Positions 23,570 through 47,765 of a DNA stretch of 64,000 bases are shown piece after piece (position 1 is the first letter of the stretch; the number at the start of each line of letters is the position of its first letter). The translations under genes and the position numbers were made by a program. Origin of the DNA: Octopus sinensis (Eukaryota); contig NC_043013.1 in NCBI RefSeq assembly GCF_006345805.1, forward strand, positions 44,392,001 through 44,456,000, written 5' to 3'. The notes below the pieces were generated by a model. The model saw nothing but the letters and a program-made list of their open reading frames with translations. It had not been told where the DNA came from and ran no database searches.

Positions 23570-23600
<31 letters not shown>

Positions 23601-23858
23601 CCCAAATACAGTATCAAAACTGTGTGTATACAGTATGTGTGATGTTATATCCTCATTGATTTTTATGTTGTTATTATTGTTGTTGCTAATAGTCTCCACA
23701 CCAGGAAAATGTAGAGAATATTGCTGGGAGAAAGAAGAAATTGACGAGGAAATGTTTAAAAAAATGAGAAAGAAATATAAAATAAAGAAGAAAAAAAACT
23801 GAGAGGAGGAAGAAAGGGAGACAGAGTAATGTTCAAAGTAACATTTAACATTCCATGG

Positions 23859-23933
23859 CTATAGGAATGCACTTGGATTTGCCCTCGGATCTTTCTGGTT
23901 CCGATATCGCAGTGCCAACCAAACACCAATAAT
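23859..23933 (-). CDS. TSPAN13/31: Tetraspanin-13/31 terminal coding exon, distal copy ([24 protein letters not shown])
   Basis: Acceptor tctttattctcttacag (CAG at 23934-23936), phase 0; stop TAG at 23859-23861. Family C-terminal motif intact. Confidence 0.95.
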
Positions 23934-25422
23934 CTGTAAGAGAATAAAGAAAGAATTAAATTATAATCTATGTGTGTGTTTGAATGTCCAAACAAGAAGG
24001 AAAAAGTACTCAATATAAGCAATGTATATAAATAAAATGTGATATAAACAGTAAATACAAAACCGTGTGTGTGGCTTGGCCTTACTTCATTGCCATTTTG
24101 AGTTTCCCATTACTCACCATAACCATCGTTTATAAAGAGCAGGCATAGGAAACCTTTTCTTTTTTGAGAAGTAGGCTACATGAGGCATGGCTCATCTATT
24201 TCTTTATTACCCACAAGGGGCTAAACACAGAGGGGACAAACAAGGACAGACATAGTTATTAAGTCGATTATATCGACCCCAGTGCGTAACTGGTATTTAT
24301 TCAATCGACCCTGAAAGGATGAAAGGCAAAGTCGACCTCGGCGGAATTTGAACTCAGAACGTAGCGGCAGACGAAATACGGCTACGCATTTTGCACGTCT
24401 CTGCCAGCTCGCCGCCTGGCATGGCTCATTATCAGACAGACTTCTCTACTAAAAAAAACTTTCAGAGTAATTTTTCATTGGGCGAGTCATTCAGAAAGTC
24501 CTGCTGGTTGCAGTTTGTCCATGACTGGTGTAGAGAAATAGTTTCCAACTTAAGGAAATACATTAGTGAAGGAAGTCTTAAGGAGTCACTGGGGATTATT
24601 ATTTTTCTGAGCAAAATAATAGGAGCTCAGGGTAACAACAAGGTGAAACTTCAGTTTTGAAAAAATGAACCCCCACCACTAGCACCACCACACACTCTCT
24701 ATATTTAATGTTTTTATGACATTTTATGTCAACTTGCTACTTTGTTTTTACTTGTCAATGACACTGAAAGTAAATCCCAGAACAATGACCGGACAGAAAT
24801 CACCGACGGAGGCCATCAGCATGGAAAACAAATAGTTTATGCATTGCTAACATAATACGCAAAAAATTGCGAACGTAATTAGCAAAAACAATTTTTTCAT
24901 TAATCAACATTCCTCCTGCAACATTAACCCGAGGGCTAAAATTAATTAAATCTACCTTTGGCAGTCATAATGACAATTCTGGACATGCAGTCACCATATG
25001 CACGTAAAATAAACAATTAAGTCAGTGCCAACATAACGTAGTAACAAGACAATGTTTAATTAATCAAAATTAATTAAGATTGCAGCAAGAAAAACATATA
25101 TCAGACAGGGGAGACAACTCTGAAAAGCCAAAATTAGAATTACGTATTTAATAGAAGAAAAGTATGGACACATTGGTAGTCGTAAAAATGCAGGATTATT
25201 AGAGATGTGATACAGAATTCTATGTAGCTAGGATATATATTTGGCAAAGCTGGTAATAAGACCATGGCCAAATGTGAAGTGTAGTCCCTCATTTTAATTG
25301 TTAATAGACCAGGATTAAAGTGAAATCTAGGACCCAACTACACAAATATTTCAGTAACCAGTCCTGACTACATTATTAGATTAAGGGTGTGTGTGTTTGT
25401 ATTCTTCTTCTTCTTTTGATGA

Positions 25423-25461
<39 letters not shown>

Positions 25462-28400
25462 TTATCTATCCAACCACAGACGTGGCTGTGTGGTTAAAGA
25501 GCTTACTTCCCGTCCATGTGGTCTTGGGTTCAGTCCCAGGGCACGACACATTTCACAAATCTCTTCTACTATAATCTCGGGTCAGCCAGAGCTTCGTTAG
25601 TGGATTTGGTAGACGAAAACTGAAATAAGCCTATCACACACATACAAACTAATGTATGTGTGTCTTTGGTGTGTATTCTTATCTTAACATCACATGATGG
25701 TTGAAAGCAAACATTTTCTTCATTTCCAGTCTTCTGTGAAAAATGTTTGGCCATGAGAAATCTTACCTTACTTGAAGGGTTGCTAACAAGACGGACGCCC
25801 AACTGGTGAGAAATCTGTCTCAACAAATTCCGTCCGACCCATGCAAGCACTGAGAATAGCAAAGAATTCTCCCATTACCTCTGACCAATGACAGCTGATC
25901 CCCTCAAAATTGAAGGTTCATGCTTACTGGCCAATGTGGAGACACCCCTCAGCCAGAGCTTTCATAACATATACAACTAATTGTTGTAAGGATATAATAC
26001 ACAAGCATACGACTGTAGTCATGTGTGTATGAATTTAGGAAAAAAAAAAAAGAAAAAAGCTGTGTAGTAAGAAGTTTGCTTAGTCCCACTGCGTGGCACC
26101 TTGGGTAAATGTCTTCTATAGTCTTGGGCTGACCAAAGCCTTGTGAGTGAGTTTGGTAGACAAAATCTTAAAGAAGTCCATCATATATGTGGTGTGTGTG
26201 TGTGTGTATGTGTTAGCTTGCCACCCACCACCACTTGAAAACCATTATTGGTGTGTTTACATCCCCGTAATTTAGTGGTTTAGCAAAAGAGACCGATAGA
26301 ATAAGTACCAAGCTTTAAAACAAAACAGAACTGGGGTCAATTCGTTCAGCTAAAATTCTTCAGGGCGGTGTTCCAGCATGGCCAGTCTAATGGCATGAAA
26401 CATGTAAATGATAAAAGATAAATGAAAGAATAATAAATCTGTCACCATTAACCTCATCACTATAATTCCCCTTCTACCAGGTTGCTTTAACTCATTTGTG
26501 GGGCCAAACATGCAGGGAGTTACTCTATAAACATATCCCCAAATACTCCTTGATGTGCTTCTAGCTTCTACCATCATCATCATCATTTAACGTCCGTTTT
26601 CCTATGCTAGCATGGGTTGGACGGTTTTGACTGAGGGCTGGCGAACCAGATGGCTGCACCAGGCTCCAGTCTTGATCTGGCAGAGTTTCTACAGCTGGAT
26701 ACAATTCCTAACGCCAACTACTCCTAGAGTGTAGTGGGTGCTTTTTTACGTGCCACCTGCACGGGGGCCAGTCAGGCGGTACTGGCAATGACCTCGCTCA
26801 ATAAACATTACTTCAGAAGGATTAATAAGAACGCTAAAGGGTTAAGGGTGAGTAGTAATAACTTGGAATAAAATGAAAATAAAGATATTAGTGAGGAGGG
26901 TGGGGGCAAAACAAACTCTCAAAGTATAAGGTGAGCATAAGAGAAGATATGATGAGTGGATCGGGGGAGATGTTTCGATGTTCTTTCTCTGGTGTGAAGG
27001 ATTAATCAAACATGATTATTCAATTTCTTTAACCATCTGTAGCTATGTGTTGCAATCACACAGGTCCTAGCTTCCTTTGCTACTTGTTGTCACAAAACCT
27101 GCTAAAAATAGTAGCCAAATCTTCTTCAAATCACACCTTACCATTAAAAACTGGCAAGGATGCCTTAAATAACATAATCCCAGAGATCTCTGAAAAAAAC
27201 AGGATAGCCATGGATGGAATGCCTTTCATCAGATCAGCTCAATCAGGGTTGAATTGGGACTAAACAATAATAATTTTTACCTCTTTATTATGAGAATATA
27301 TTACTCTTTTACTTGTTTCAGTCACTTTACTACAGCCATGCTGGAGCACCGCCTTTAGTCGAGCAAATCGAACCCAAGACTTATTCTTTGTAAGCCCAGT
27401 ACTTATTCTATCCGTCTCCCCTCAACACATTAACTAATAAGGGAACCCTTGTAAGATACAAGGGGCTGCTGAAAAGTCCCTGACTTTAAGGGTATTGTAA
27501 AAGGCCTGGTTGGAGGCCTAACCTTCTGAATTCTTTTACAGGGCTTAGAAAACTGAAGGTCTGCTGCAACAAGTGTGTGAATCTGAGAGGGGAAAATGTT
27601 GAATAAAAACCTCTATTTTCTTTTATCTAAAGCTAGGAACTTTCCAGCAATACTTCGTACATTGTTAACCAACTATTCGCCTTTTAGTTTTCAAACCAGC
27701 CAAATCTGGTCCCTCACACCTACTCTACATTGCTATTTTAAAAATAAAATAAACAGCCATATCATAGAAATCAAAACAATGTGAATAAATAAATATTACA
27801 TTTGACAAAATAATCTGAATGCTAAAGGGTTAAAACAACACTTGATATTATTGTTGGTTGAGGGAGACAGTTAATATTTCTCACTCCTGTTACTTTCTTT
27901 ATATTCTGTCGTGAACCCCTCATTCCAAACTGTTTTCATCCTACAGTTACTGAAAGACTTCTATGTGAGATGAACAAATATTGGTTTCAAATTTTGGCAC
28001 AAGGCCAGTAACTTCAAGGGCAGGGTTAGTCAATTAAATCGACCCCAGTGCACAACTGGTACTTATTTTATCGACTCCGAAAGGACAAAAGCAAAAGTGA
28101 ACCTTCACTGGCATTCAAACTCAGACGAAATGCCGCTAAGCATTTTGCCCAGCATGGTAACAATTCTGCTGGCTTGCAGCCTTAGAGATTAACAAAAATT
28201 ATTGCTAGGATTGTAGCACACATAAATCCGAAGACCAAATCCAAAGATAACAACAACAACGATAATGTAATGTTAGCTGGAAAACTGAATCTGAATGAGA
28301 AATCATGTTAGGAAAAACATTTCAATAGAAAACAACTTGACCTTTTCTCGACAATCCAATGACAGTTTTTTTTATTTTATTCCATAAACAAATCAGTGCA

Positions 28401-28896
28401 TGCATGCATGCGCACGCACAACCTATGTTCAATGTATTTCTAAACATCTAATGATAACATTTAAACATTTCTTATATTGAACAAAAAATGGAACATTGCC
28501 CTTATAGATTGAGGGATGATAAGTGGGTGAGATTGATGTCGTTAACATTCCATTAGAATCTTTGTAGATGAACACACATGTATCCATGTATGTATGTATG
28601 CATGGATGGATGGATGAATGAGTATGTGTGCATGTATGCTTAATGGATATAATAAAGGAAAATTCATTGTTGTAATAAGCTTTTCCCTTTATCATCTTAG
28701 AGAGCGATGGGAGAAAGATTAGCAATGATACAGACAAAAGGAAAGATATTTCAAGAACTTTCAATATCTTAATATGTGTGTGTGTGTGTAAAGGTAAGAT
28801 CCAAGGATCAAGGTGTAGGAAGCTAGTATGTTTCAAGCAGTTTGTCCAAGGCATAAAAACAACTTTCAGGAACAATAGTGGTTTATTGGTGTAGAA

Positions 28897-29094
28897 CAGT
28901 GGTTGCCAAACTTTTTAGAGTCGCGACCCACTATTTATCACGCCAGTTTATGACGACCCACTTAACTCTACTGAACTAGCTCAATAGACAGCAGTTAATC
29001 AAAGCTAATGTGTAATTTTATAACTTTTTGCGACCCACTAAGATTCCGTTCGCAACCCATCTGTGGGTCACGACTCATAGTTTGGGAACCACTG
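28897..29094. mobile_element. hAT-type MITE, 198 bp
   Basis: TIR CAGTGGTTGCCAAAC / GTTTGGGAACCACTG; perfect 8-bp TSD GTGTAGAA at 28889-28896 and 29095-29102. Confidence 0.92.
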
Positions 29095-29522
29095 GTGTAG
29101 AAGGTTGTAAATTTTTTCCCATATCGAAGTTTGATAAGCTGAAAAAATGTTATTTTGTAGTTCACAGTTAGCAGCTGGGGTTGCTGTGTGTGTGAATCTA
29201 CTCCATTCCCTAATTTTGGATATAAATATATACACATATATACACACATGAGTAAGCAGATAAATGCAAAACAAGGTGGAGAAAAATAGTACTTGAATAC
29301 CAGTGGTAGAGTAATGTCCTCTTTTTTTATTATTAAGGACTGCAAGAAGATCACAAGAAACTGTTACTCAGAGTTTCACGTTCCTGTTCATTGAGCTGTT
29401 GTGACCAAGAAAATACTGATCACAACTGCCTAACAAACGGGAACATGAAACTCTGAGTAGTAGTTCTTTTGCGATCTTCTTGCAGCTTTAATAATAATAA
29501 AAAAAGTATATATAATAATAAA

Positions 29523-29933
29523 AAGGCGCAAGAGTGGCTGCGTGGTAAGTAGCATGTTTACCAACCACATGGTTCCAGGTTCAGTCCCACTGCGTGGCAC
29601 CTTGGGCAAGTGTCTTCTACTATAGCCTCGGGCCGACCAAAGCCTTGTGAGTGGATTTGGTAGACGGAAACTGAAAGAAGCCTGTCGTATATATGTATAT
29701 ATATATATATATGTGTGTGTGTGTATGTGTTTGTGTGTCTGTGTTTGTCCCCCTAGTATTGCTTGACAACCGATGCTGGTGTGTTTATGTCCCCGTTACT
29801 TAGCGGTTCAGCAAAAGAGACCGATAGAATAAGTACTGGGCTTACAAAAGAATAAGACCCGGGGTCGAGTTGCTCGATTAAAGGCGGTGCTCCAGCATGG
29901 CCGCAGTCAAATGACTGAAACAAGTAAAAGAGT
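29523..29933 (+). mobile_element. Family-A SINE with central (TA)n/(TG)n. Other copies: 5864-6228+, 9825-10205-, 14700-15090+, 30340-30628+, 35605-35990-, 36615-37032-, 43270-43650-, plus fragments
   Basis: Shared tRNA-like head GGCGCAGGAGTGGCTGTGTGGTAAG..GGTTCAGTCCC and tail GACTGAAACAAGTAAAAGAG in many copies. Confidence 0.9.
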
Positions 29934-30347
29934 ATATATGAAAATGAATTTTGGAAGTGTCAAATGGGTTGGTATTTACAGACAAGAAATTAAATTTTGA
30001 ATACGCTAAAGCAGTGAAAACAGCAGAAAGATTAGGTATTCACTCATATAAGATGGAATAAAGTCGCCAGTAGGTGACTATGTGCTCTACCATTAAGCTA
30101 AATGGACCCCGACAACAATTACCATCAATTTTAATGCTAAATAATAGCTTTTCAAATACAAAAGTGTTTTATTAACAAATATAGACAATTGGTGTCTGAG
30201 GAGTACAGGGTTCGATTCCCATAGTCACCTGTTGGCAACTTTGTTTCTGTCTTATAAGGGTAAATGCCCAATATTTCTCTGCTGTTTTCACAGTTATACT
30301 ACATTCAAAATTTACTTTCTTGTCTCTAATATATATAGAAGCCTGTC

Positions 30348-30402
<55 letters not shown>

Positions 30403-31479
30403 TGTGTGTGTGTATGTGTGTGTGTATATGTTTGTGTGTGTGTATATGCTTGACAACCGATGCTGGTGTGTTTACATCCCCGTCACTTAGCGGTTCGGCA
30501 AAAGAGACCGATAAAATAAGTACTGGGCTTACAAAGAATAAGTCCCGGGGTCGATTTGCTCGACTAAAGGCGGTGCTCCAGCATGGCCGCAGTCAAATGA
30601 CTGAAACAAGTAAAAGAGTAAAGAGAGTATAAAGTGTGTGAGTGTGTGTGTGAGAGAGAGTGGGTATGTGGGTGTGTGTTCAATTAAACCCTGTAGAGAG
30701 CAATGTCACAATATCTATAGCTGAATATGACCTAAAGATCCTGAAGACAAGTCAAATATTTCAGTAGTTTAGTTATTGTACTTTTCAACCACAACAATGT
30801 ACAATATTGATAACAAGTACGACAACAGCAATAAAATTATTTCTTAATTAAGCACAAAATTTTAGGCAAGTAAAGTCAAGTGTCTTGCCCAACACTTGCA
30901 GTGGCTAAGGAATTCATGACTCTGAAGAAGCCAAAATTCTTCATTTTTACTTTTCTGGTGCAGAGAGAAATAATAAAAAGCTAGGTGGCCATGCAATGGA
31001 AGAGCAGCAGCAGTAGCAGCATTAGAGTTGAAGAACTGACAGAAATTGTAAAGTGGAGGTTTATAAAACCAAATTGATGAAATAGAGAAATGTTGGGGGA
31101 TCCAGGAAAATGAAAAAGTGAATGGAATATTAACAAGCAATTTTAATTTTTATTGGACGCATGAAATACATAAAGCAAAAATAAACCAAAAAGAAAGAAA
31201 AACAAACAAAAAAACATAAAATATGGCAAATAAATATAAAAGCGATAATCAAGCGTAAACAGAAAAGAAAAAAAAAAAAGAGCTGAAAACATTTCAAGAT
31301 GCAATTATGTTCAAGAAAGATAAAAATCTGATACATGTGACCTCCACCACAATAATAAGTTAAGATTAACAGTTTAGATATCTGAGATAATGAGTTGTTA
31401 TTACTAAGATGAGATTATTTTATTAGCCTCATTATTAAAATATATTTATTATCTACACTATGTTTTGATCTCTTATTAT

Positions 31480-31968
31480 TGTCATCAGGTGTTTTATTCT
31501 TGAATGCCTTACTTCTCTGGGCATGGACACATTAAAACTCCGATGTCTGGCAGCTGACTTGGCAGACACCCATAAAATTATTAACCATCTTACAAACAAT
31601 AACTCTGAGCACATTTTCAAACTCCACCCGTCTAACACCCGTGGACATGTTTACAAAGTCAGAAAACAGCACAGGTCCCATGACTTTAGGAAACATTTTT
31701 TCATGCTGAGAGTTGCTGAAGCATGGAACAAACTGCCGGCATCAGTTGTTAGTTGTCGGAGCACTGCATCCTTCAAAACTTCCATGCTTCCTGAGATTCG
31801 CCAACACTACACCTGATTTTCTCCCCTCCATACACACGCAAGCATGTATCTGACTCATACACTGTTCACTTCCCAAACATTTGTACATTACTACATATGC
31901 TTTACACACACTTTTGACAAGTTGTGGTACACCTGAGCACTGGATACAATAATTTCATTATTATTATA
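31480..31968 (+). mobile_element. CR1-clade LINE 3' fragment with (ATT)n tail
   Basis: DTLKLRCLAADL..NTRGH..FRKHFF..RVAEAWNKLP, followed by a 3' UTR shared with 16290-16578. Confidence 0.88.
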
Positions 31969-32299
31969 ATGTAAATGTGTATGACCTGGTGGTTAGGGTG
32001 TTGCAATCACAAACAAAAGATTGCAGTTTTGATTTCCATATTGGGTGGTATGTTGTGATCTTGAACAAAGCATTTCATTTCATGTCGCTCCAGTTCACTC
32101 AGCCATAAATGAGTAACCTTGTGACAAACTGGGGCAATGTTTTGATCTCTTTCACATATATATAATAATGAACTTATTGTAAACAGGACTCAGGTGTGCT
32201 ACAATTCATCAGAAAAAGTAACCAAAAATGTAAGAACAGTACATAGAATGCACAGAAGGTGGACAGAGAATGAGTTGTTTCAAAAATTTAAAAGACAAA

Positions 32300-32650
32300 A
32301 AAAAGAGGGGACATCAGGTGTATTGTTGATGAATTTCAGGAAGCATGGGAGTTTTGAAGGATGTGGTGTCCTGATAGCTAACAACTGATGCAGATAGTTT
32401 ATTCCATGCTTCAGCAATTCTGAGTGTGCAAAATTGTTTCCGAAAGTCATGGGCGCTGTGTTTTTCTTTTTGATTTTGTAAGCATGTCCACGAGTGTTAG
32501 ACATATGGAATTTGAAAAGGTGCCCCAGGTTGTTGTTAGAAAGATGGTGGATAATCTTGTGGGTGTCTGCGCTGTCAGCTGTCAGACGTTGGAGTTTTAA
32601 TGTGCCTATGTCCAGGGAAACAAAATGTTCAGAGTATGGTGGATGCCCTA
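32300..32650 (-). mobile_element. Older CR1 fragment of the same family, inverted
   Basis: LDIGTLKLQRLTADSADTHKII..NTRGHAYK on the minus strand. Confidence 0.8.
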
Positions 32651-33649
32651 TGGTGGGTATTTGTCTAGCTGTGGTATTCGTCAAACTGAGTAGCCAGTTC
32701 TATGAGTCCTTGAACCCAAGACAGCAACGTCCAGGAGACTTGCAATGCCTAGAGTCCAAGACTAAATTCAAATACCAATATTTATTTCTAAAGCTAGTAA
32801 TAGCTTTATCTTAGAAGTTACTGCTGTCTGTGTTATCCTTAGTTTAGACATAAAACTCTATTTTATCATCCCCAAAAGGACAAAAGACAAAGTTGACCTT
32901 TGCAGAGTTTGAACTCAGAACACAGTGAGAGGTAAAATGCTGCTAAGTATTTTGCCCAGTGTGCTAATGATTTTGCCAGCTCACAGCAATAATAATGATG
33001 ATGATGATGATGGTGATGATGATGGTGGTGGTGGTGATGGTGATGATGATGATGGTGGCAGCGGCAATCAATTTCAACATTAGCATATGCCACAAATTTG
33101 ATGGAAGAGTATTGTCAACTTAATCAATCCCAGTTTCTAACTTAATAATATAATTATTAATCCCGCTGAAGGATTAAAAAATAAAAAAAATTTTCTACCA
33201 TAGCCTTGGGTCAATATTAAGCCTTGTTTAGTGAGATCATTAGAGAGAAACTAGGGAAAAAGCTTGTCAGATGTACTGTACTTGTGACTCAAAGAGCACG
33301 ACCTTGTCATACACTGATTCTGTATGACCATTAATTAAATTAAGAGTAGAATTGTCTGTGGAATACTCAGTCATTTATTACATAATTCAATGAATAGATA
33401 GTCCTATTGACTGAACAACTGGGATGCTAATTTGTCAGATTCAACAAAACAGTCCATCTGATATCTATTAAATAATAATATCATAATTAGAAATTAATGA
33501 CTAAGAGATTAATATAAATGGCATTAGATTTTATAAGCACCAATTTCAGACTGTAGTGTTTATCAGTTAACATAGTCACCCAGTAACATAAGAGATAACA
33601 CGATTTAAGCCCCCGTCAGTGAAACAATTAAACAAGGTTTTCTTTTACA

Positions 33650-33835
33650 ACCTCAAACAAATTGGTGCTTGCCACACCCTAGCGGTTGAGGGAACCTGTG
33701 GAAGAGGCAGACCCAGGAAAACCTGGGACGAGGTGGTGAAGCACGACCTTCGAACTTTAGGTCTCACTGAGGAAATGACTAGAGACTGAGACCTCTGGAA
33801 GTGTGCTGTGCGCGAGAAGACCCGGCAGGACAAGT
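33650..33835 (+). mobile_element. RTE LINE 3' fragment
   Basis: VEGTCGRGRPRKTWDEVVKHDLRTLGL..DLWK. Confidence 0.85.
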
Positions 33836-34504
33836 GAGTCCACAACCGTGGCCTTCTACATGGGATGGAGCCAGCCTACGTATGCATACCTTCCCTTCTT
33901 GGACACAAAACTCTACTTGTGAAGACGTGTTGAGGCAAGTGAGGATCAGAATCGAAATCGATCAATGGAAATTGCGGATGTGCTACCAGTGCCGGTGGCA
34001 TGTCGAAACTCTGCTTGTGAAGACCCATTGAGGCAAGTGAGGATCAGAATCGAAATCGATCAATGGAAATCGATCAATGGAAATTGCAGATGTGTTACCA
34101 GTGCCGGTGGCATGTAAGAGAACTTTCCGTTTCGCGACCGTTGCCAGCACCGCCCCGTTTCGTGTCCGTTGCCAGCCTCGCCTGGCCCTCGTGCCGGTGG
34201 CACATAAAAAGCACCATCCGTTCGTGGCCGTTTGCCAGCTCTGTCTGGCACCAGTGCGGGTGGCACGTAAAAAGCACCCACTACACTCACGGAGTGGTTG
34301 GCGTTAGGAAGGGCATCCAGCCGTAGAAACACTGCCAGATTTGACTGGGCCTGATGAAGCCTTCTGGCTTCACAGACCCCAGTAGAACCGTCCAACCCAT
34401 GCTAGCATGGAAAACGGACGCTAAATGATGATGATGATGATGATGAATGTGTAAAAAAAACTATATGTGTGTGTATATACTTTATGTGGTCTTATTTAAA
34501 AGCA

Positions 34505-34640
34505 AAAAAAGAGGCGGGGCATCAGGTGTATTGTTAATGAATTTCAGGAAGCATGGAATTTTTGAAGGATGTAGTGTCCTGATAGCTAACAACTGATGCA
34601 GAGAGTTTATTCCATGCTTCAGCAATTCTGTTGCATTTAC
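34505..34640 (-). mobile_element. Short CR1 3' fragment
   Basis: Homologous to 32310-32425. Confidence 0.7.
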
Positions 34641-35809: not shown

Positions 35810-35856
<47 letters not shown>

Positions 35857-36829: not shown

Positions 36830-36870
<41 letters not shown>

Positions 36871-37559
36871 CGACAGGCTTCTTTCTGTTTCCGTCTACCA
36901 AATCCACTCACAAGGCATTGGTCGGCCCGGGGCTATAGCAGAAGACACTTACCCAAGATGCCACACAGTGGGACTGAACCCAGAACCATGTGGTTGGTTA
37001 GCAAGCTACTTACCACACAGCCACTCCTGCGCCTCTGTGTGTATATATATATTATATATATTACAACTATCACTATATCAATGAGGTTATCATAACTACA
37101 GTTTCCTACCAACATATACCATTGTGTTGCTAGTGGAATGAGGAAGTGAAGAAGTTTGTGGTTTTTATTCTGGACATAGAGTACGAGCTTCAACTTTTCA
37201 ACTAAAAAAAAACCAACAAAAAATACCTTATCCACTAGGTCACTTCAACTGCTAAATTAAGATAAACAGTAGTCTGTTAACATTAGTCCATTAACAGATT
37301 GTTGATACTATATTATTCCTCTCTCCCAGACTTTATAATAAACCTTTCATTGAATATTTTTTTACCCCCAAACTGAATTCCCTGTTTCCATCAAAAAGCC
37401 CTCCAAAAGGTCAAAAAAGTTTCAGGGTACACACAATATCTTTCTTCCCAAGAAATGTACAAAAAAAAAAAAAATTTAAATGTATAAAATGTCTGTTTAA
37501 AATTAAATCTTTTTAGTTGCATTAAAATAGGGTTTATATAAAATACAAGGAAGTATATA

Positions 37560-37626
37560 AAATATGGGAAGAACATGAAATATGGGAAGAACATGAAATA
37601 TGGGAAGAACATGAAATATGGGAAGT
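37560..37626. repeat. 18-bp tandem repeat AAATATGGGAAGAACATG x ~3.5 (probably in the 3' UTR of the proximal TSPAN exon)
   Basis: Read directly. Confidence 0.85.
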
Positions 37627-37914
37627 ATTTAAAATATGAAGGGTTTATGAAATATGCAAAGTAATAAAGTATGGAATGTTTGTATAAAATAAGCAAAATA
37701 AAATAAAATAAAATATGCAAAGTATAAAAAATACGTGAATAAGCAGAAATGGGTCAGAAAAAAGAAATGGTTGACTTGGTAACACAATAGCAATAGGAAA
37801 ATAAAGAAAGGATGAGGCAGAGTGGGAGAGAGAGAGAAAGAGAGATACATAGAGCTGAGGCAGATAAAATTCAGGGGGCTTTACTGTACCTAATGATAAC
37901 ACAAGTGGTAACCA

Positions 37915-37989
37915 TTAAAGAAACGCATTGGGGTTTGCTCTAGGGTCTTTCTGGTTACGGTATCGCACCGTAATCCAAACACCCAGTAT
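37915..37989 (-). CDS. TSPAN13/31: Tetraspanin-13/31 terminal coding exon, proximal copy ([24 protein letters not shown])
   Basis: Acceptor ttcttttttctag at 37990-38002, phase 0 matching the upstream exon ending in GAG; stop TAA at 37915-37917. Near-identical to the vertebrate TSPAN13/31 C-terminus (..[15 protein letters not shown]). Confidence 0.95.
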   Translation of the reverse strand: MLGVWITVRYRNQKDPRANPNAFL

Positions 37990-38895
37990 CTAGAAAAAAG
38001 AAACGACTAGATTGGTTAGTAGTGTAGCTAGCAAGAAGATACAAACAAATCATTCAATTTGATTTCATAGCTGATAACAAGACAGACGAGTGCTGATTAC
38101 AAATGGTATTTCAAAGGGAATGTTAAATAATTACTGCATTTTACCCCATAAAGGAACTGCAGGGAATTATGTTAAATTGTAGAATTAGTTGTGTTAGTGT
38201 TAGAAGAGTTAATGTGGTTAACTAAAAATAATTATGCAGTGAGATAAAAAGCAATGGTAATCAATAATTAGAAACAATTATTTTTGGTAAAAGGTGGAGA
38301 CAATTCTGGGCATATTTTGGCCATATTCTAACTTCATCAGCAAAGCATAATAATCATTGTGTTTGCTTAAGTAAAAATGAGATAATCAACAAGCATATGT
38401 ACAAGTCTGCACATTGGTTAGTATTGGAACTGTTTAGAAATTAAATAATTCTAGAATATTAGTCTGTTGGCTCATACTCTTCTCTTCAATACTGCGACCA
38501 TCTGTTAGATAGGACAAACTAAGAAAGAATCCTCACAGAGCCCTCTGATGCCAGAGAGCTGGCAGAAACTTTAGCATGCTGGACGAAATGTTTAGTGGTA
38601 TTTCGTCCACCACTGCGTTCTGAGTTAAAATTCCGCCAAGGTCGACTTTGCCTTTCATCCTTCGGGGTCGATAAATTAAGTACCATTTACATACTGGGGT
38701 CAATGTAATCAACTTAATCCCATTGCCTGTCCTTGTTTGTCCCCTCCCTGTTTAGCCCCATGTGGGCAATAAAGAAATAAGAAGGCTTTATGTTATATTT
38801 ATAGTTGTCACAAGTCTATTCCTTTAAAATTACAAAAGTATCTATCTCCATCACTGAGACAAGGACACATTTTTAAGGAGAGTATCATCAGTTAA

Positions 38896-39126
38896 CCCTT
38901 TAGCATTTAAACTGGGCACATCAGGCCCAAGTATTCTACCTGTTTTATGCTCAAACCAACTAAATCTACCCTACACTGTCCCTCTCACACCTACCCTACA
39001 CTGTCATTCTAAAAATTAGCAATCACATCAACAAAATCCCAAAGCTACAAGATAATGCATGATTAATTTAAAATAATATGAATAAATGAACAACACATTT
39101 GACAGAGTAATCTGATTGCTAAAGGG
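38896..39126. mobile_element. piggyBac-type MITE (related copies near 27660-27830, 39960-40165, 57050-57268)
   Basis: TTAA|CCCTTTAGCA ... TGCTAAAGGG|TTAA. Confidence 0.8.
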
Positions 39127-40601
39127 TTAAATCAAGTCCAATACTTGACTACTATTTTAGTTTACCAACACCATGAAGGATGAAATGCAAAGTTGATTTC
39201 GGCAGGTTTTGAACTTGGACCATATGAGGCCAATAGATAAATACAAGCTATTTTGTTCAACACCACTAAATTCTGTTCATCCACTACCCTTAACAAAATG
39301 CAAAAATATTACCATTTTTTTTTGGTTTTGCTTTCAGTTATAGTAGCCTAATCCAGTCTGATTAAACCAGTATTATTGTCTTTTGTTCTGGCAGTGTTTG
39401 TTTAAAAAGAAAATTGTAATACTATTAACACATTGACATAAAAACTGTTAAATGCTTAGTTCTTAAGTCTTTTTTACAATAAATACTTGCTTTCCTTTCC
39501 TCATCCACCCTGCACTGCCCCTCCCTTCCACTTCTCTGTATTTCCTGTTTGTGTTTGTCTTTTCACACACAATCTACATAAAAATATATTTCTTTGAACA
39601 ATCAAGTGGTGCTACTGAGTTAGTCATAGCTCGAGCCACTATGACCCGAAACCTATATGTTTGTGCATTGTATGTGTGTATGTGTGTGATTGTATACATT
39701 ATGCTGAAGTGTAAATGTTTAGAATTTGAAGTCCCATTACAACATGCTGACAATTTATTATGACCCCCTTCTGTCAGGATTCACCACACTAGTATTTTTG
39801 TCCTTTACAATTTGTTTATGCTACCAATGACAAGACAACTGTCAAGGTGTGACATGATAAGATAAGCTCATAAGCCAAGCTGCACTGCAACCTGAAGATA
39901 GCAGTAAAACTTGGTCAGCTTTTTTTTTTTTATCCTTAAATCTTTAGTATTCAGATTATTCTGTCAAATGTAATGTTTGTTTATTTAGATTGTTTTAAAT
40001 TAATCATGCATTATCTTGTAGTTTAGAGACGTCGATGATGTGATTGCTTAGTTTTAGGATGACATTTTAGGGATGAGGCAAGAGGCCAGTTGCGGTCAGT
40101 TTCAATATAAAACAGGTTAAATATTTAGGCTGGACATGGGGTTGGTTTGAATGCTAAAGAGTTAAGAAGAGCTACTAAACACTTAGGGCAAAGTATAGCA
40201 CCAATATTTGCTCTAAGTGAGTTTTCAACATGTAAATATACTGTTACAAACAGTATATAGAAGAATGATGAGCTGGCGAAAGAGCCTCAACATGTTTGCT
40301 CGACATGCAAGAAACAACAGTCAAACCTCTCTCAGATCACATATTTGATGAATCTCAGAGTGAAACCCAAGAGACTGAATGATGATAATTTGTTTGTTAA
40401 ATACATGTTTTTTCCTTCTGAGACTTTCAATCTCTAAACTGTATCAGAGAGCACAACTTGAAATATATTCTTATATAAAATTAATAAAGAATATATAATA
40501 ATCCCTTTCAGTGGTATAAATGTAAAGAATCGTTATATTATCTAAAATGTATAATTTGGAAATGCAGTTCATTAAATTGACCTCAGTAGTAAATATCTGA
40601 T

Positions 40602-41340
40602 AGTTAGTTAGTTAGTTAGTTAATTTGGCTCAAAAGCAAATAGCAAGGCCATGTAGGGGGACATGGAGTTAAGTACAGGGTGGTGTTCATGTAAAGAGTT
40701 CAGGCCACTTGTGGTCCAGGGAGGCTTTGAACAAAGTGGTCGTCGGCATCTTCACCATCTCGTCTGGCAGCTTGTTCCACGGATCCGCAACCCGGATGGA
40801 GAAAGCTCCTCTCCTTCGATTGAGATGAAATCGTCGCAGGTAGAGCTTTTCGGAATGACCCCGCAGCCGACGCTCTGGAGCAGGAGTGAAGAACAGCTCT
40901 TTCGAGAGGTTACACTTTCCGCTTATGATGTTGTGGGCGAGAATGAGATCACCACGGCGGCGGCGTTTTTCTAGAGAATAAAGGTCGAGCGTCCTCAGCC
41001 TTTCTTCATAGGACAAATTTTTGAGACCATGAACCATGCGGGTAGCCAGCTTCTGGACTCTTTCGAGATGCTGTATGTCTTTGAGGAGATAAGGAGAAGA
41101 GGCTTGAATCCCATACTCCAATATGGGTCTCACCAGCGTGACATAGAGTGGTAGGAATATGGCTGCTGTGAGCATTCTGAATGACCGTCGAATCAAGAAC
41201 AGAATCCCGCGTGCTTTGTTGGCAGCATGGACGCACTGGGCCGAAGGCGAAAAGGAGGAATCCACCAAGATACCCAGGTCCTTTACCTGATCGGTCCTCT
41301 CCAGCAGCAGACGACCCGGCTCGAAATCAAGTTGAGTTGC
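40602..41340 (-). mobile_element. CR1-clade LINE, 5'-truncated, intact ORF2 C-terminus with (TAAC)n tail
   Basis: ORF 40687-41268: LYVTLVRPILEY..LERVQKLATRMV..YEERL..LEKRRRRGDLI..RGH..WNKLP..FKASLD, the typical CR1 ORF2 C-terminus. Confidence 0.92.
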
Positions 41341-41758
41341 AGGAGTAGAGCCGACAGGCAGAGAAAAAGGGAGGATTCCAATGGAATTTTGATAACAAAA
41401 TATAGATTGATGAAGCCAAGCACTTCAAAGTATTTAATTTGGTATGCTGCTAACTCTGACACACACACACACACACACACACCACCGTCACTGTCTCATC
41501 CTCATTTAATGTCCATCTTCCATACCAGCATGGGTATTGGTTGAGCTGCAGGACTACATTGAGCTTCAGTGTCAGCTTTGGCATGGTTGCCACAACTGGA
41601 TGGCCTTCCTAATGCCAAACACAGTAGTGTGTATCATATCTAACAATAATTTCCAACAATAGTGTATTCAAATGAGCATGCATTTGAAAGCCTCCCTTTT
41701 GTTGCTTATTGGCTGAATCTTAAACATAAAACTGGGGGTAAATTAAGTTGCTTATATA

Positions 41759-42634
41759 CAAGATCTGATCAATAAGTATCCGGACTGTTGCCATAGCAAC
41801 AAAGCTGCTTGATAAAGACTGAGCTTGAATTCTGCTGTGCAGGCACTTTAAGTTTTAACGTTCTAGCTCACTTCCGCTGTTTACAGCAGTGCTTGGAAGG
41901 AAGATGTGTAGCATGTGATCATTGCATTGACCATGACAGAGAAAGTTGTCATGGCGATACCTACTCAGAGGCCTGCACAAAGTTGCAGAAAGTGCATGGA
42001 GAGGTCTGTATGAGCCACACACAAGTGTACGAGTGGTTCAGATGTTTCCAAGATGGGTGGAAACATGTCGATATTGATGAATGTTCTGGGACATCTGCAA
42101 CCAGCAGAACTGAGAAAAATATCATAGATGTGCATGCAGCTGTGAGGGAAAATCATTGAATCACCATCCGTGAATTATCAGAGTATGTGCAAAGTAGTTA
42201 TGGCTCAGTTCAGTCCATTATCACTGAAGATTTGGGTATGAGACGCTTGTCTGCCAAGTTTGTGCCAAATCTGCTTTCAGCTGACCCAAAAGACACTTGG
42301 GTTTCAGTTGCACAAGATCTCCTTGATTGTATCAAGAACGATGAAAACATTTTGAAAACTTTTGCATAGGCCTCTAAGTAGGTATCACCAAGGTTTTGGC
42401 AAAATTTGATGCAGACTCTTTGCTCAACTCTCTCTGTCATGGTCAATGCAACGATCACACGCTACACACCTTCCTTCTAAGCACTGCTGTAAACAGTAGA
42501 AGTGAGCTAGAATGTTAAAACTTAGTGCACATGTACAGCAGAGTTGAAGGTGAATCTGTACCAAGTGGTTTTGCGCTGTGTGCTTTAGCTTCGTTACTAT
42601 GGCAACAGTCTGGATACTTATTGATCAGACCACG
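41759..42634. mobile_element. Non-autonomous mariner derivative with an inverted duplicate 5' end
   Basis: TIR TCTGATCAATAAGTATCC(G/A)GACTGTTGCCATAG at both ends, flanked by TA. Plus-strand transposase N-terminus (..QVYEWFRCFQDG..ITIREL..LGMRRLSAKFVP) and a minus-strand copy of MTERVEQRVCIKFC. Confidence 0.9.
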
Positions 42635-43917
42635 TATACAATATAAACTAGATATATGTGTGCGATATTATACACATGAAGAAAAACCAACCCATTACAC
42701 TGTGCTCCCAATGGCAAAACTTGGGCTAAGAAGGAAGTCTCTATGTGGTCACATGACCTGCTAGGAATAATAGTCAAATCTCCCTCAAATCAAAATCACA
42801 CCATTCTAAGCAATGAAGAACACACTGATCAGCATGATTTTAGATAATCCTAAAAAGATGGAATGACTAGCAGGAATGCTTTTGATGATAGGTGTGGTTT
42901 ATTGAAGTCAACCAAGGGTTAAACAACAATGGTACAATGAAGTTGGGTATTAATTCATCAATTAGAATTACACAGTAAAACTATTTCAGATTTAGCTGTA
43001 GTTATTATATGACATACATAATGTAGTTTATATATGCCAGTGCCATGTAAAAAGTACCTAGAACACTCTGTAAAGTGGTTGGCATTAGGAAGGGCACCAA
43101 GCCATAGAAACCCTGCCAAAACAGACAACCAAAGCCTGGTGCAGCTCTCCAGCTCCCATCAAAATCATCCAACTCATGCCAGCATGGAAAACAGATGTTA
43201 AATGATGATGATGATAGCATATACATATACATACATACACATACATACATACACATACATACATATATCTTTTTACTCATTTACTTGTTTCAGTCATGTG
43301 ACTGTGGCCATGCTGGAGTACCGCATTTAGTTGAGCAAATCGACCCCAGGACTTATTCTTTGTAAGCCTGGTACTTATTCTATCGATCTCTTTTGCCGAA
43401 CCGCTAAGGTACGGGGACGCAAACACACCAGCATTAGTTGTCAAGCGATGGTGGGGGGGCAACCACAGACACACAAATATACATATATATGACGGGCTTC
43501 TTTCAGTTTCTATCTACCAAATCCACTCACAAGGCTTCGATCAGCCTGAGTCTATATCAGAAGACACTTGTCTATGGTGCCACGCAGTGGCTCTGAACCC
43601 AGGACCATGTGGTTGGTAAGCAAGCTATTTACTACACAGCCACTCCTGCATCAACTGTCATATATTTAATCTGAGCAAGCTTGAACTGACGATGATTGTT
43701 ATGTTTATATTACACTTAAAATTTTCATGTCAGACTTAGCAACGCTAATTTACTTCTTTCACACATGCTAATCTGCTAGGCATTTATATTCAACTCAAGC
43801 ACACAAGTAGAGCATATCAAAACTATTTCATAGTTTAACTCCTAGCTTTTTGCTTTTAAATTTTCCTCTGTCACCCTTTGTCATATATTACAATATCTTA
43901 CTACAGTATTTCTCGAC

Positions 43918-44246
43918 TGAATTTGTCCTTTACTTGGATGAATTTGTCTCTCTCTCAAATGAATTTGTCCCTTTCTCAAATGAATTCGTCCTTTACTTGG
44001 ATGAATTTGTTCTTTTCTCAAATGAATTTGTCCCTTTCTCAAATGAATTCGTCCTTTACTTGGATGAATTTGTTCTTTTCTCAAATGAATTTGTCTCTTT
44101 CTCAAATGAATGTCTCTCTCTCAAATGAATTTGTCCCTTTCTCAAATGAATTCATCCTTTACTTGGATGAATTTGTCCTTTTCTCGAATGAATTTGTCTC
44201 CTTCTCGAATGAATTTGTCCCCTTCTTAAATGAATTCATCCCTTTG
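43918..44246. repeat. 21-bp tandem array (TGAATTTGTCCCTTTCTCAAA) x ~16 inside the transposon left end
   Basis: Units counted directly: 15 complete (one is 19 bp) and one partial, with 63-bp higher-order periodicity (a ...TTTACTTGGA variant recurs). Confidence 0.95.
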
Positions 44247-44468
44247 ATATCAAAGTCAATTTAGAACTTAAATATTTAAAAATGAGACACCTATATGTTT
44301 AAACAAACATACAAAATAGTATCTTAGCACGAGAATAGTGAAAATAAACAAAAAAAAAACTAAGCTTAAAACAATTTATAAACTTATTTTAAAATGCTTA
44401 TAATCATAACTATTTCACAAATCCTTCATATGCAATAGTTGTGGGATGAAAAATGTTTGATGTTGATC

Positions 44469-45585
44469 CTATCTTGCACAATTTACAGCAGATATTGAAT
44501 TCATTGCAAGATGCACTGCTGTTTTTAAAATATTCATTCTATGATTCATCACGGGCAAATTTTCTGGTCTGTTGTAGAGATCATTTTTATGATTCTGTAA
44601 ATGCTGCTTCACAAAAGATTTCAATTCGTTGAACGTTTCCTCAATGAGATTAAACATTGGAGAATAAGGAGGTAGATATTTAACCATCTTTTGTGGTGCG
44701 AAACCGATTTCATCGACATGTTTATGGATGCGTGCATTGTCCATAATAAATATGACAGGATCTGATGTAGTCGTAGTGATCTTTAGCGAACTCTGATGTA
44801 AAAAGCTGTCAAATTCAGAAGTTGTGATCTTCGTAAATGTTTTGAATTGGACAAGACCCGACATATCTCTAGCAGCAATAATGTTCAAAATTTGCCCCTT
44901 TAGTAGAAGGATGATCGGTAATTGCCTGAACTCGAGGGTAAGCTCTACCCATTGACCTTCAAACAAATAGGTCATAAAATTATTTCATAAGCAAAAATTT
45001 TATATAAGTATTTAGTAAATTTAATAATCATTTACCTTGAAATTCAAATGTAATTTGTTTCATCAATATATACACGATAGTTGAACCGTCCAACCCATGC
45101 TAGCATGGAAAACGGACACTAAATGAATGATGATGATGATGATGAATGGCCAATCCATTATCTTGAATCCATTTTGCATAATAACATTGCCCCTTATTTT
45201 GTGTTTTCGTTATTTTGTTCTTGAGGGTGAATTATTAGTTTTTTCAGAGTGTATCCAAAGCCATCAAGATAGAGATCAATACTTGATAATGAAACAGTCA
45301 AATCGAATTTCTTTTGTAAAAGTTCTCTCGTTCTTTTCAAAGTTAAAGTTGGATCCTCGTTAATCGATTCTTGTAAAAATTGTTGATGATTTTAATTGAT
45401 TTTTTGCTGTCGGTGCCCACAATTTTTCTTTAGAGAATAATTTTTTTGTGCAATTATCTTGACTGTGCTGTGGTTAATATCAAGGAAGCGGGACAACAAT
45501 TTCAAATTTTTAATGTTTCTGGAAGCGGACAATATTCTTTTTTTTTATCCTGCTCAGATACTTTCATGTACGTCTTGTTTGGCAT
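44469..45585 (-). pseudogene. DDE_3 (IS630/Tc1-like) transposase, two exons, disrupted
   Basis: ATG at 45585. Motifs: HTH-like EDPTLTLKRTRELLQKKFDLTVSLSSI; D1 in VYIDET; D2 in IMDNARIH; E in YLPPYSPMFNLIE. Disrupted by in-frame stops, frameshifts and a SINE remnant at ~45080-45140. Intron at 44957-45035. Confidence 0.88.
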
Positions 45586-46624
45586 GTTAAAAATGTTTAA
45601 ACTATTATGTTTTTAAACGGACTTTAATACTGAAAGGATGAATTCATTTGGGAAATACTGTAGTTTTTCATAATGTTACTTACTCAAGGAGTGTCATGTG
45701 CATACTGCTGGTATAAATGTATAATTAGAGTGTAATAACTAAGAAATGACGGAGAATTGTTATTTGTGAAACTCTATCAAGGATAAATGTGATAAATCAT
45801 TTCGCAATTGTTACAAGAAATTACTATATTTACAGATTTCTCAGTGCTGGAGCTGACTTTATAAAGAATGCTTTATTGTACTCAGTAGTTCAATAGCTCA
45901 ATGTTGTGAGTTCAACACTCACCTTTCCTAAAGACTTTCATACCAGTAACACACTGGTATTAATTCACCTCCAAACACATTCCCTAAAAATTGCTGCACC
46001 AGTAAAATAAAGGCAAATAAATAAATGGACTTCTGTTCATTTCAACATGATCAACTGAACAACCTGCTTGTTAAATTTGCATGTAAGTGACTGAATATTC
46101 CATGGATGTTTGTGCTCTTAGTGTAATCTTCAATCAGAGTCAGCATGGCACAGCAAGTGACAAGGACAGACCTTTGAATTACAGTTGCAACACATATGAA
46201 GGGCTTCCACTCACTTTCAGTCCACTCACAAAGTTTGAGTTCGCTCAAGGCTACTGTAAGAGAAACTTGCCTAAGGTGTCATACAGTCAGGGATTGAACC
46301 CAGGGCTTCATGACTGGAATGCTAACTTCTTAATAACTAATCATCCATGCAGCATCCACTCTACATTAATCTGATTTTAATCTACATCGAAACACTTATC
46401 CATCCAGGTTTTAAAGGTAGAGAATAAAGGTAAATGCCAAGACAACAGTAAGTTTATATTTGTATTTTAATTTTAATTTAGAGGTTTACTGTTCAAGGTT
46501 CAAATCTTGCTTAGGTTGATTTAGTTATTGATGTCATCAAGGTCAATAAAAATAAGTTTTAGTATTATATACTGAGACCAATTCAATTAATAGTATCCTT
46601 TTCACCTAAATATATATATATTGT

Positions 46625-46826
46625 GATTGTGTGTGTACCGTTGGCGATTTTTCCCCTCCGTCTTCCCTTCTCTGGATCTTTCCTTTTCCTATGTTTCTGA
46701 CGAAGAGCTCCGCTCGAAACGTTAAACCCTCCTTCTTCCCTTCCTTCCTGAGCGTCCAATAATACTATATTTGTTCCACGTCCTCGCGTTGTTGTGTTTT
46801 TTCTTTGTGTTTTCATGTTTGGATTA

Positions 46827-46830
<4 letters not shown>
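46625..46830 (+). mobile_element. Penelope-like element terminus (pLTR) between (TA)n tracts
   Basis: Contains a hammerhead core; a homologous copy lies at 62205-62400 on the minus strand. Confidence 0.7.
46693..46727 (+). ncRNA. Minimal type I hammerhead ribozyme (dimer-type)
   Basis: GTTT-CTGACGA-a-GAGC/tcc/GCTC-GAAA-CG-TT^AAAC: stem I GTTT/AAAC, intact core, palindromic ACGT stem III. Confidence 0.7.
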
Positions 46831-46863
<33 letters not shown>

Positions 46864-47516
46864 CTGGTGGAAAGTGGGGGTTGTATTTAATTAATGGAAT
46901 GTCAGTTCTATTGAAGAGAAGCATGTTTTATATTCAATCCCCATTCAGTTAAGCTGAATGAACACAATATGAAATACCTTACAATGAAACACAAGCTGTG
47001 TGACAAAAAAGAACTGGTGAAGCATAAGCTGGTAGTACAACATCTGATTTGACCTAGCTATCTCATTTCCATCAACGATAGCTAATTAGAAAGTCACTTG
47101 CACCAATAAAGAAACCTCTATGTGATGATTGTTCAACATACTACATACAGCACCCAAATTTTCCACAAATTACACCCTACTTTGAATCATGTTTCCCTAA
47201 ATATATCATGATGTCTGGGGAAGTTTAAAAAAATGAGAGGGATAAATGCAGTTGGAACATCTTTGACCACTGGTCTTCTGGATCAGGACTGACCTGGCAC
47301 TGAAGAACAACGATACATCTTAATTAGGGAGGTTACAGTAACGAAATAATAATCTAGAGATAAAGAATGAAAAAAAAAACAAAAAACTACTGCAACCCTC
47401 CCCTTCCAGCACTGTCTGTTCAGTACACAGCAGCAAGTAATACCATATCAAAGCAGACAACATGGCCTGGTAGGCCAAAAATAGTCTGTGCCTGGATTAT
47501 GAAAACTGTAACTTAC

Positions 47517-47667
47517 CTCAGTAAAGCTAAAGAACAATCCTATTGCACCGGTCACAGTGAAGGCTTGATGTATACGGTCTTTTAGTTTAGGTAGACATGG
47601 CTGGCACGGACATGTTAAGTTTGAAGATTTTCCAGTGCAGCATTCACTGTTATTTTCACAACAGGGA
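47517..47667 (-). CDS. TSPAN13/31: Tetraspanin-13/31 penultimate coding exon (EC2 C-terminal half plus start of TM4)
   Basis: Minus strand: ctcattcttacag|A TTC CCT ... ACT GAG|gtaagt; 151 nt = 1 nt + 50 codons, FPVENNSECCTGKSSNLTCPCQPCLPKLKDRIHQAFTVTGAIGLFFSFTE. The CC..C.C.PC cysteine pattern and GLFFSFTE motif are diagnostic of TSPAN13/31. Confidence 0.96.
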
Positions 47668-47734
47668 ATCTGTAAGAATGAGAAATAGGTTAAGATAAAT
47701 TAATAATTCAATAATACTAATTGGGTTAATTGTG

Positions 47735-47765
<31 letters not shown>

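Follow-up and report, generated by a model that had tools for sequence, protein, structure and literature searches.

The TSPAN13/31 gene and its two tail exons

The window analyzed here is a stretch of 64,000 nucleotides (nt) of the Octopus sinensis genome (NCBI RefSeq assembly GCF_006345805.1, contig NC_043013.1, positions 44,392,001 to 44,456,000), in which a tetraspanin gene was found to have two homologous endings. All tetraspanin features in the window lie on the minus strand and make up the 3′ part of one TSPAN13/31 gene, namely a penultimate coding exon (exon 4) and two tail exons, for which the coordinates are collected in Table 1. The proximal tail exon was designated T-type and the distal one A-type, based on residue 7 of each (Thr and Ala, respectively), and they are referred to below as T and A.

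Exon 4 encodes IPCCENNSECC...GAIGLFFSFTE, which covers the final portion of the large extracellular loop and then half of the fourth transmembrane segment (TM4), as far as a conserved intramembrane Glu, and corresponds to residues 151-201 of XP_029646715.1 and XP_029646714.1. Its splice sites are the acceptor ...cattcttacag/ATT and the donor GAG/GTAAGT (a slash marks the exon boundary), and it is 84% identical across 176 nt to the equivalent region of the Argonauta locus (L001:34214-34389). An earlier interpretation of the window, made from its letters alone (the sequence-only reading), had already described a single penultimate exon ending in phase 0 at 47517, although it placed the start at 47667 instead of 47669. 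The T exon follows ...cttttttctag and yields ILGVWITV...NAFL, and the A exon follows ...ctcttacag, within the strong acceptor ...ttctttattctcttacag, and yields IIGVWLAL...SAFL; both products end at a stop after 24 codons. The two exons are of equal length, both have phase-0 acceptors, and they have 19 of 24 residues in common and differ at 19 of 75 nt. Four of the residue differences fall in the helix part and one (N/S) in the tail. The same two phase-0 exons, with strong acceptors and starts at 37989 and 23933, had been recognized previously as two terminal exons, a description that holds for the exons themselves and probably fails for the proximal one, which is more readily understood as an internal cassette (see below). 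The comparison made of them at that time was exact for the tail (10 synonymous codons plus the stop, and one amino acid, S/N) and correct for TM4, where IGVWLAL versus LGVWITV amounts to four different helix residues.

Searches with TSPAN13/31 proteins (tblastn) matched each tail exon with expect values (E) of 1e-10 to 1e-14 and exon 4 with 1e-5 to 1e-7. Across the 64 kilobases (kb), neither tblastn nor phmmer on all open-frame pieces detected another tetraspanin exon at better than E ~0.2, and exons 1-3 were not found in the window by either program with vertebrate TSPAN13/31 queries. Since the annotated gene range is ~112 kb in O. sinensis, O. bimaculoides and O. vulgaris, exons 1-3 must lie beyond position 64000. 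The gene accordingly has four coding exons upstream of its tails, three of them outside the window, and not five as had been supposed. A candidate third copy of the tail exon at 9505-9561 (+) (FSYVEII..NQKDPK; 75 queries, E > 0.1) was rejected as a chance NQKDP match with no open exon context.

The tail exons and exon 4 belong to one gene, not to tandem genes. That the locus instead holds two tandem TSPAN13/31 genes, or a duplication created by mis-assembly, is an explanation to which we give almost no credence. Nothing was found in its favor. The interval from 23.9 to 47.5 kb yielded no second exon 4 or upstream exon, nor did the rest of the window, and five independent assemblies have single upstream coding exons followed by two tail exons. 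In addition, the 19 differences in 75 nt speak against an assembly duplicate. The absence of a second set of exons between the tails, as stated in the sequence-only reading, was borne out by these searches (tblastn and phmmer) and by the same single-gene layout in five other species.

The full-length product, of which the last 75 residues are encoded in the window, matched the Pfam family Tetraspanin (PF00335) with E = 1.1e-21, and its best named protein matches were TSPAN31 and TSPAN13. The locus is the single octopus orthologue of TSPAN13/TSPAN31 (fly Tsp97E). Consistent with this identification, both tail exons carry the conserved TSPAN13/31 C-terminus, which is present in >100 homologues from vertebrates to insects. 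The TSPAN13-like group is characterized by introns 1, 2, 4a and 6, all of phase 0 (PMC2650405). This pattern is seen in the five coding exons of Argonauta, chiton, scallop and nemertean, and in the window, which does not reach introns 1 and 2, exon 4 begins and ends in phase 0 and TM4 is interrupted by the last intron. Fly Tsp97E, listed as an orthologue of TSPAN13, and human TSPAN13 also have a U12-type intron 2 in common (PMC2831892, Table 2), and the U12-type 5′ splice site GTATCCTTT was found directly after exon 2 in each of the five loci that were fetched (Argonauta, chiton, scallop, nemertean and sawfly). Branch sites of the form TCCTTAAC were observed in intron 2 of Argonauta and sawfly. 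In Argonauta, chiton and scallop, a gene for a mitochondrial carrier (Mito_carr) was observed upstream on the opposite strand, a microsynteny that extends across mollusc classes.

A 74-residue fragment used as a protein query returned only proteins of <130 residues and none from a cephalopod, and a chimeric full-length query was used thereafter. This query matched "tetraspanin-13 isoform X2 [Octopus sinensis]", for which the 90% cluster contains X1 and X2 of O. sinensis, X1 and X2 of O. bimaculoides, one O. vulgaris protein and one Argonauta hians protein. The C-terminus of XP_029646715.1 (O. sinensis X2) matches exon 4 plus T exactly, and those of XP_029646714.1 (O. sinensis X1) and O. vulgaris CAI9735017.1 match exon 4 plus A exactly. 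The RefSeq pairs XP_029646714.1/XP_029646715.1 (O. sinensis) and XP_014787634.1/XP_014787636.1 (O. bimaculoides) are each the same through FSFTE and differ in the last 24 residues; in O. bimaculoides, X1 has the T tail and X2 the A tail, and there is an L/I difference from the window in exon 4. These models in two Octopus species agree with the earlier proposal of two isoforms with a slightly different TM4 and the same AFL end. Both Octopus isoforms are already public RefSeq models, and no new gene feature is added here. To our knowledge, the RefSeq pipeline models alternative variants only where there is transcript support.

Age of the exon pair and selection on its members

The arrangement seen in the window recurs well beyond octopuses. 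The Argonauta hians locus has five coding exons, with T followed by A at a distance of 8.6 kb. An exon 4 ending in FSFTE likewise precedes T and then A in three further loci, where the two tail exons are separated by 1.7 kb (the chiton Liolophura and the nemertean Tubulanus) or 6.5 kb (the scallop Argopecten). The sawfly Neodiprion has the T exon in first place, and its second tail exon is diverged and longer (VIAAFLARRYRNQLDP...). Paired isoforms were identified in 20 sampled species from five phyla. RefSeq or GenBank pairs that differ only after FSFTE include those of gastropods (Pomacea, Aplysia, Haliotis and Gigantopelta), bivalves (Ostrea, Dreissena and Mercenaria), the nemertean Lineus, the annelid Owenia, the brachiopod Lingula, a beetle and a mantis shrimp. 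A statement offered with the sequence-only reading, that insect Tsp97E has alternative C-termini, fits both the RefSeq entries named "tetraspanin 97E isoform X1/X2" and the sawfly locus. Two variations on the pair were also noted: a third ending, IIGVWLTLRYRKQTKHHVP, in isoform X5 of the vent snail Gigantopelta aegis, and a T tail that is longer by one residue in Lingula X1.

At residue 7, all 19 T exons have Thr and all 16 A exons have Ala; at residue 8, T exons have V or I and A exons mostly L or M. Inside the classes, 19.8 and 21.3 of the 24 residues were identical across phyla, compared with 18.0 between the two exons of one species. Since the order T then A is conserved and exons of one class resemble each other across phyla, the data point to one ancient duplication before the lophotrochozoan radiation, that is, before molluscs, annelids, nemerteans and brachiopods split, and the duplication is probably also older than the split from arthropods. 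No paper describing this exon pair was found in the literature searched, in which the protostome-wide T/A switch, with its invariant Thr/Ala difference, appears to be undescribed.

To assess selection, synonymous and non-synonymous sites were counted by the Nei-Gojobori method and compared with a one-sided Fisher test. Between the T and A exons of Octopus, 12.5 of 17.5 synonymous sites had changed compared with 6.5 of 54.5 non-synonymous sites (p = 5e-6), and over the 16 tail codons the corresponding counts were 10 of 11 and 1 of 37 (p = 2e-8). Synonymous sites between T and A are saturated and the protein is nearly unchanged. The same pattern was repeated in five more species (Argonauta, another cephalopod, the chiton, the scallop and the nemertean), and within species the T and A proteins were 75-88% identical. 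When each exon was compared between Octopus and the other cephalopod, the ratio of synonymous to non-synonymous changes was 6.5:2.5 for T (p = 0.002) and 9:1 for A (p = 5e-6). Over the shorter distance from Octopus to Argonauta, the A exon had four synonymous and no non-synonymous differences, and the T exon had three differences in 75 nt, one synonymous and two non-synonymous.

That last count, which alone shows no coding constraint, is the only result in favor of regarding one tail exon as a dead relic (a pseudo-exon) of a partial duplication in a gene that uses a single isoform. We consider such a history very improbable, given the constraint on T across the deeper cephalopod split and the saturation of synonymous sites between copies whose proteins remain so similar. 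Moreover, in each of six genomes, drawn from three phyla, both exons have kept an open frame, their length and phase, and strong acceptors, and both forms are present as assembled mRNAs and as RefSeq models in many species. Both exon copies are under purifying selection, and neither is a relic. An old duplication maintained by purifying selection had been proposed beforehand and both parts of that proposal agree with the counts, except that the age was underestimated, as the pair goes back beyond the level of cephalopods or molluscs.

Splicing of the T exon and the exchange within TM4

Evidence on how the T exon is joined to the rest of the message came from three assembled, spliced mRNA contigs (L002 to L004) from one or more other cephalopods with 80% protein identity to Octopus. 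In L003 and L004, exon 4 is joined straight to the A exon and then to a common 3′ untranslated region (UTR). In L002, exon 4 leads into the T exon, whose TAA is followed by a further 27 nt (...CACTTCTTAG); the next base is the first of the A exon, which is present with the same 3′ UTR behind it, and L002 and L003 converge to identity exactly at that base. A corresponding boundary is predicted in the octopods. In Octopus, the 25 nt after the T stop end in ...CATTAG and are followed by GTACAGTAAAG, and in Argonauta ...AATTAG/GTACAGTAAAT stands at the equal distance, so that TAG/GTACAG is kept 25 nt past the T stop in both. The region conserved between the two octopods reaches from ACTAAC, 31 nt before the acceptor, to ~55 nt past the predicted GT, after which similarity decays. 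This T block (187 nt, 88.8% identity, only 75 nt of it coding) is the strongest of three unique syntenic matches between Octopus and Argonauta, the remaining two being exon 4 and the A exon. The stretch just ahead of the acceptor (37990..38020) is nearly unchanged in Argonauta, with one mismatch in 31 nt, and the intronic stretch beyond the predicted donor (37837..37889) is probably a splicing-regulatory region, to judge from its conservation.

In view of the fact that L002 continues from T into A, that the donor and its flank are conserved, and that no conserved poly(A) signal lies nearby, the T exon is probably not terminal. It is most likely a 100-nt cassette (37989..37890) that carries its own stop, a design that, in cephalopods, appears to be undescribed in the literature searched. 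By the same evidence (the joining of T to A in L002, the conserved donor and the lack of a nearby conserved poly(A) signal), the unrelated 3′ UTRs of the sequence-only reading, and the UTR switch derived from them, are probably wrong. Both tails are represented in transcripts or models, as RefSeq X1/X2 in O. sinensis and O. bimaculoides and as both kinds of mRNA in the other cephalopod. Strict mutual exclusion of the exons in mRNA does not hold, as L002 contains T and A together; the two are exclusive only at the level of the protein, through the T stop.

The principal competing explanation is that T and A are two true alternative last exons, the proximal one having its own 3′ UTR and poly(A) site, with the choice settled by competition between splicing and polyadenylation. 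The RefSeq protein isoforms fit this explanation as well as they fit a cassette, and it is favored by an AATAAA 745 nt past the proximal stop in Octopus, by the weakness of the predicted T donor, and by the scallop and nemertean loci, which have no clear donor past the T stop. Against it are the L002 mRNA, in which the T exon is continued by the A exon and the common UTR, and the conservation in Argonauta of GTACAGTAAA, exactly 25 nt past the stop, with ~55 nt beyond it and decay thereafter. Furthermore, no AATAAA or ATTAAA occurs after the T stop within 745 nt in Octopus or within 2.5 kb in Argonauta. On balance we regard alternative last exons as unlikely, though clearly less remote than a relic or tandem genes.

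Several observations nevertheless weigh against a cassette with a common poly(A) region and should be set beside the evidence for it. The junction from 37890 to 23933 is inferred for Octopus, having been seen only as an mRNA of another cephalopod, and on a crude consensus score the predicted donor at 37890 is weak, at -0.7 compared with +7.8 for the exon 4 donor. Between Octopus and the other cephalopod, the 25-27 nt extensions agree in nothing but their length and their ends. It is conceivable that 27 nt separate T from A in the genome of the other cephalopod, in which case L002 would represent an alternative 3′ splice site and not a splice from T to A. The Octopus AATAAA is compatible with a separate proximal 3′ end, and a cassette and such an end could exist side by side. 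Past the T stop, a plausible donor occurs in the chiton (+31) and in the sawfly (+53), and none is evident in the scallop or nemertean. Lastly, the functional effect of the exchange in TM4, described below, is likewise inferred.

Taking these points together, the explanation that we favor, and consider likely as a whole, is a single gene in which an ancient T cassette is skipped or included and both mRNAs end at one common poly(A) region. By the skip route, exon 4 (phase 0, ...FSFTE) would be spliced directly to the A exon at 23933, giving the A tail. By the include route, the 100-nt T exon, an ancient tandem duplicate of the A exon, would be retained and its own stop would end translation, giving the T tail. 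The included exon would then be spliced from its weak, conserved donor (TAG/GTACAG) to the A exon, such that the A coding sequence would turn into 3′ UTR. The choice of T may be regulated through the conserved intron sequence that flanks it, and the T mRNA would be expected to escape nonsense-mediated decay because its stop is <50 nt (25 nt) from the last junction. Candidate poly(A) signals after the A stop, as judged by a hexamer scan, are an ATTAAA at ~323 nt and an AATAAA at ~1297 nt.

RNA structure was considered as a reason for the conservation of the T block and rejected, as the fold z-scores were not significant (-1.6 in Octopus and -0.26 in Argonauta). A 7-bp hairpin (UUACGGU...ACCGUAA) was observed within the T exon at 37940-37968 (-) and is kept, with G-U wobbles, in Octopus, Argonauta and the other cephalopod, but the block as a whole folds no more stably than shuffled sequence does.

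At the protein level, the exchange is limited to the cytoplasmic half of TM4 (A/T: I/L203, L/I207, A/T208 and L/V209) together with S/N222 in the tail, the remainder of which is kept. The exon boundary falls directly after Glu201, in the middle of TM4, and residues 203, 207, 208 and 209 form the cytoplasmic end of the helix before the RYR anchor. Counting from Glu201, residue 208 (T/A) lies seven positions further on and hence on the same face of the helix. An AlphaFold model, used for the extent of the helix only (45 homologues; moderate confidence, with a predicted local distance difference test score of 67), has one helix over residues 175-215 that spans the exchanged residues. A single-sequence search found no close solved structure, and a profile search reached only TSPAN7, TSPAN15, CD9 and CD53, aligning Glu201 with a polar TM4 Gln of TSPAN7 and TSPAN15. 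We speculate that the isoforms differ in TM4 packing, in lipid contact or in the choice of lateral partners. This conserved splicing event suggests that a specific helix face is functionally important in a tetraspanin about which little is understood.

The deep conservation of the pair and its probable cassette design make the locus of moderate interest, the isoforms themselves being already annotated. For genome annotation, it is of practical relevance that short last exons duplicated at a spacing of 10-20 kb may be genuine in cephalopod genes, and masking them as pseudo-exons is to be avoided.

Among the transposon fragments in the intron between exon 4 and the T exon are an open reading frame (ORF) for a DDE_3 transposase (Pfam E = 4e-13), a Mos1-type HTH_48 ORF (E = 1e-5), and a 193-residue ORF that has no Pfam match and resembles the tail of a non-LTR (long terminal repeat) reverse transcriptase. 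Two families of repeats resembling short interspersed nuclear elements (SINEs) are also spread through the Argonauta locus at 70-90% identity. A neighboring gene downstream was sought in 1-23 kb by comparison with the Argonauta flank, which yielded shared repeats only.

Table 1. Features of the TSPAN13/31 gene and repeats, in window positions unless a locus is named
Feature	Position	Strand	Description
Coding exon 4 (penultimate)	47517..47669	-	153 nt, 51 codons, phase 0 at both ends
T-type (proximal) exon	37890..37989	-	72 nt coding, TAA 37917..37915, predicted 25-nt 3′ extension ending ...CATTAG
A-type (distal) exon	23859..23933	-	terminal coding exon; 72 nt coding, TAG 23861..23859
3′ end of intron 4 ahead of T exon	37990..38020	-	branch-point-like ACTAAC, polypyrimidine tract, acceptor ...TTTCTTTTTTCTAG
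Predicted weak 5′ splice site TAG/GTACAGTAAAG and conserved downstream intronic block	37837..37889	-	GTACAGTAAA identical in Argonauta
Intron, exon 4 to T exon	37990..47516	-	9,527 nt; transposon fragments, SINE-like repeats, no tetraspanin exon
Predicted intron, T cassette to A exon	23934..37889	-	13,956 nt; dispersed repeats only, no tetraspanin exon
Start of shared 3′ UTR	23150..23858	-	patchy blocks conserved with Argonauta for ~700 nt
U12-type intron 2 donors, outside the window	L001:24941 (Argonauta), L005:7685 (chiton), L006:7631 (scallop), L007:6891 (nemertean), L008:5430 (sawfly)		GTATCCTTT
Long (CA)n microsatellite	~47730-47800	-	~60 nt upstream of exon 4 acceptor
Transposon fragment	44469-44975	-	intron, exon 4 to T exon
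Transposon fragment	41809-42159	+	intron, exon 4 to T exon
Transposon fragment	40687-41268	-	intron, exon 4 to T exon
SINE-like repeat family, ~150 nt	13528-13689, 34292-34446, 48731-48890, 60830-60984, 26572-26733, 43063-43215		
SINE-like repeat family, ~100 nt	29575-29687, 5914-6026, 14755-14855, 1208-1308, 10052-10142, 35861-35951, 43490-43597		

Comparison with known exon pairs and with the vertebrate paralogues

Arthropod Tsp97E is the same gene with the same split after FSFTE and the T-type ending first (the Neodiprion locus, and the Oratosquilla and Agrilus isoforms). Its distal exon is strongly diverged and longer (e.g., VIAAFLARRYRNQLDPDEKAARAVFPRQNYLY), whereas the lophotrochozoan exons differ mainly at three or four helix residues. 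More generally, the octopus pair resembles the tandem-duplicated homologous exons that are alternatively spliced in other genes in being adjacent, equal in length and phase, alternative in the coding sequence and ancient (this class of exons is treated by Kondrashov & Koonin 2001, Letunic et al. 2002 and Abascal et al. 2015, as cited in PMC9882654). Under the cassette model, it differs from that class in that the exons are not strictly exclusive in the RNA and the upstream stop provides exclusivity at the protein level.

The 4A and 4B exons of KRAS offer a close parallel, being tandem homologous last coding exons whose proteins differ only in a C-terminal membrane-associated segment. The upstream KRAS exon, 4A, has its own stop, and in 4A mRNAs exon 4B follows as 3′ UTR. 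These duplicated, alternatively used last exons arose by exon duplication followed by alternative splicing, and the pair has been kept for >450 million years (My) (PMC9882654). KRAS belongs to another protein family and exchanges a lipidated hypervariable region, whereas the tetraspanin pair exchanges half of a transmembrane helix and a nearly identical tail. The tetraspanin pair is also older than that of KRAS, being protostome-wide, and the presence of both of its exons in one mRNA has been shown only in the other cephalopod.

In vertebrates, the paralogues TSPAN13 and TSPAN31 agree with the octopus pair in last-exon sequence and show the same T/A split: at the diagnostic position, the last exon of TSPAN13 reads ...LTY... 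(T) and that of TSPAN31 ...LAM/LAV... (A). They are two genes with one terminal exon each, in contrast to the one two-tailed gene of the octopus. Human TSPAN13 has one RefSeq isoform and human TSPAN31 three, none of which swaps the tail (PMC6773723, isoform table), and vertebrates have an extra intron, 3a, in the TSPAN13-like group (PMC2650405). It is possible, though doubtful, that the T/A pair was already present in the bilaterian ancestor and that, once the vertebrate genome had duplicated, its two functions were divided between the paralogues, TSPAN13 retaining the T-type TM4 (LTY) and TSPAN31 the A-type (LAM), a suggestion based on one diagnostic residue. The hemichordate sequences (n = 3) were A-type only. 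Among hemichordates, a RefSeq isoform pair of Glandiceps talaboti was seen to have the same tail, the two proteins differing instead within the large extracellular loop, in a stretch (residues ~102-160) that is homologous between them, which suggests another pair of duplicated alternative exons in the TSPAN13/31 family.

Few alternative-splicing events are known to be conserved between phyla. If the bilaterian origin were true, a splicing switch that has persisted for >550 My in protostomes would be equivalent to a vertebrate gene pair, a possible case in which the splice isoforms of one lineage match the gene duplicates of another.

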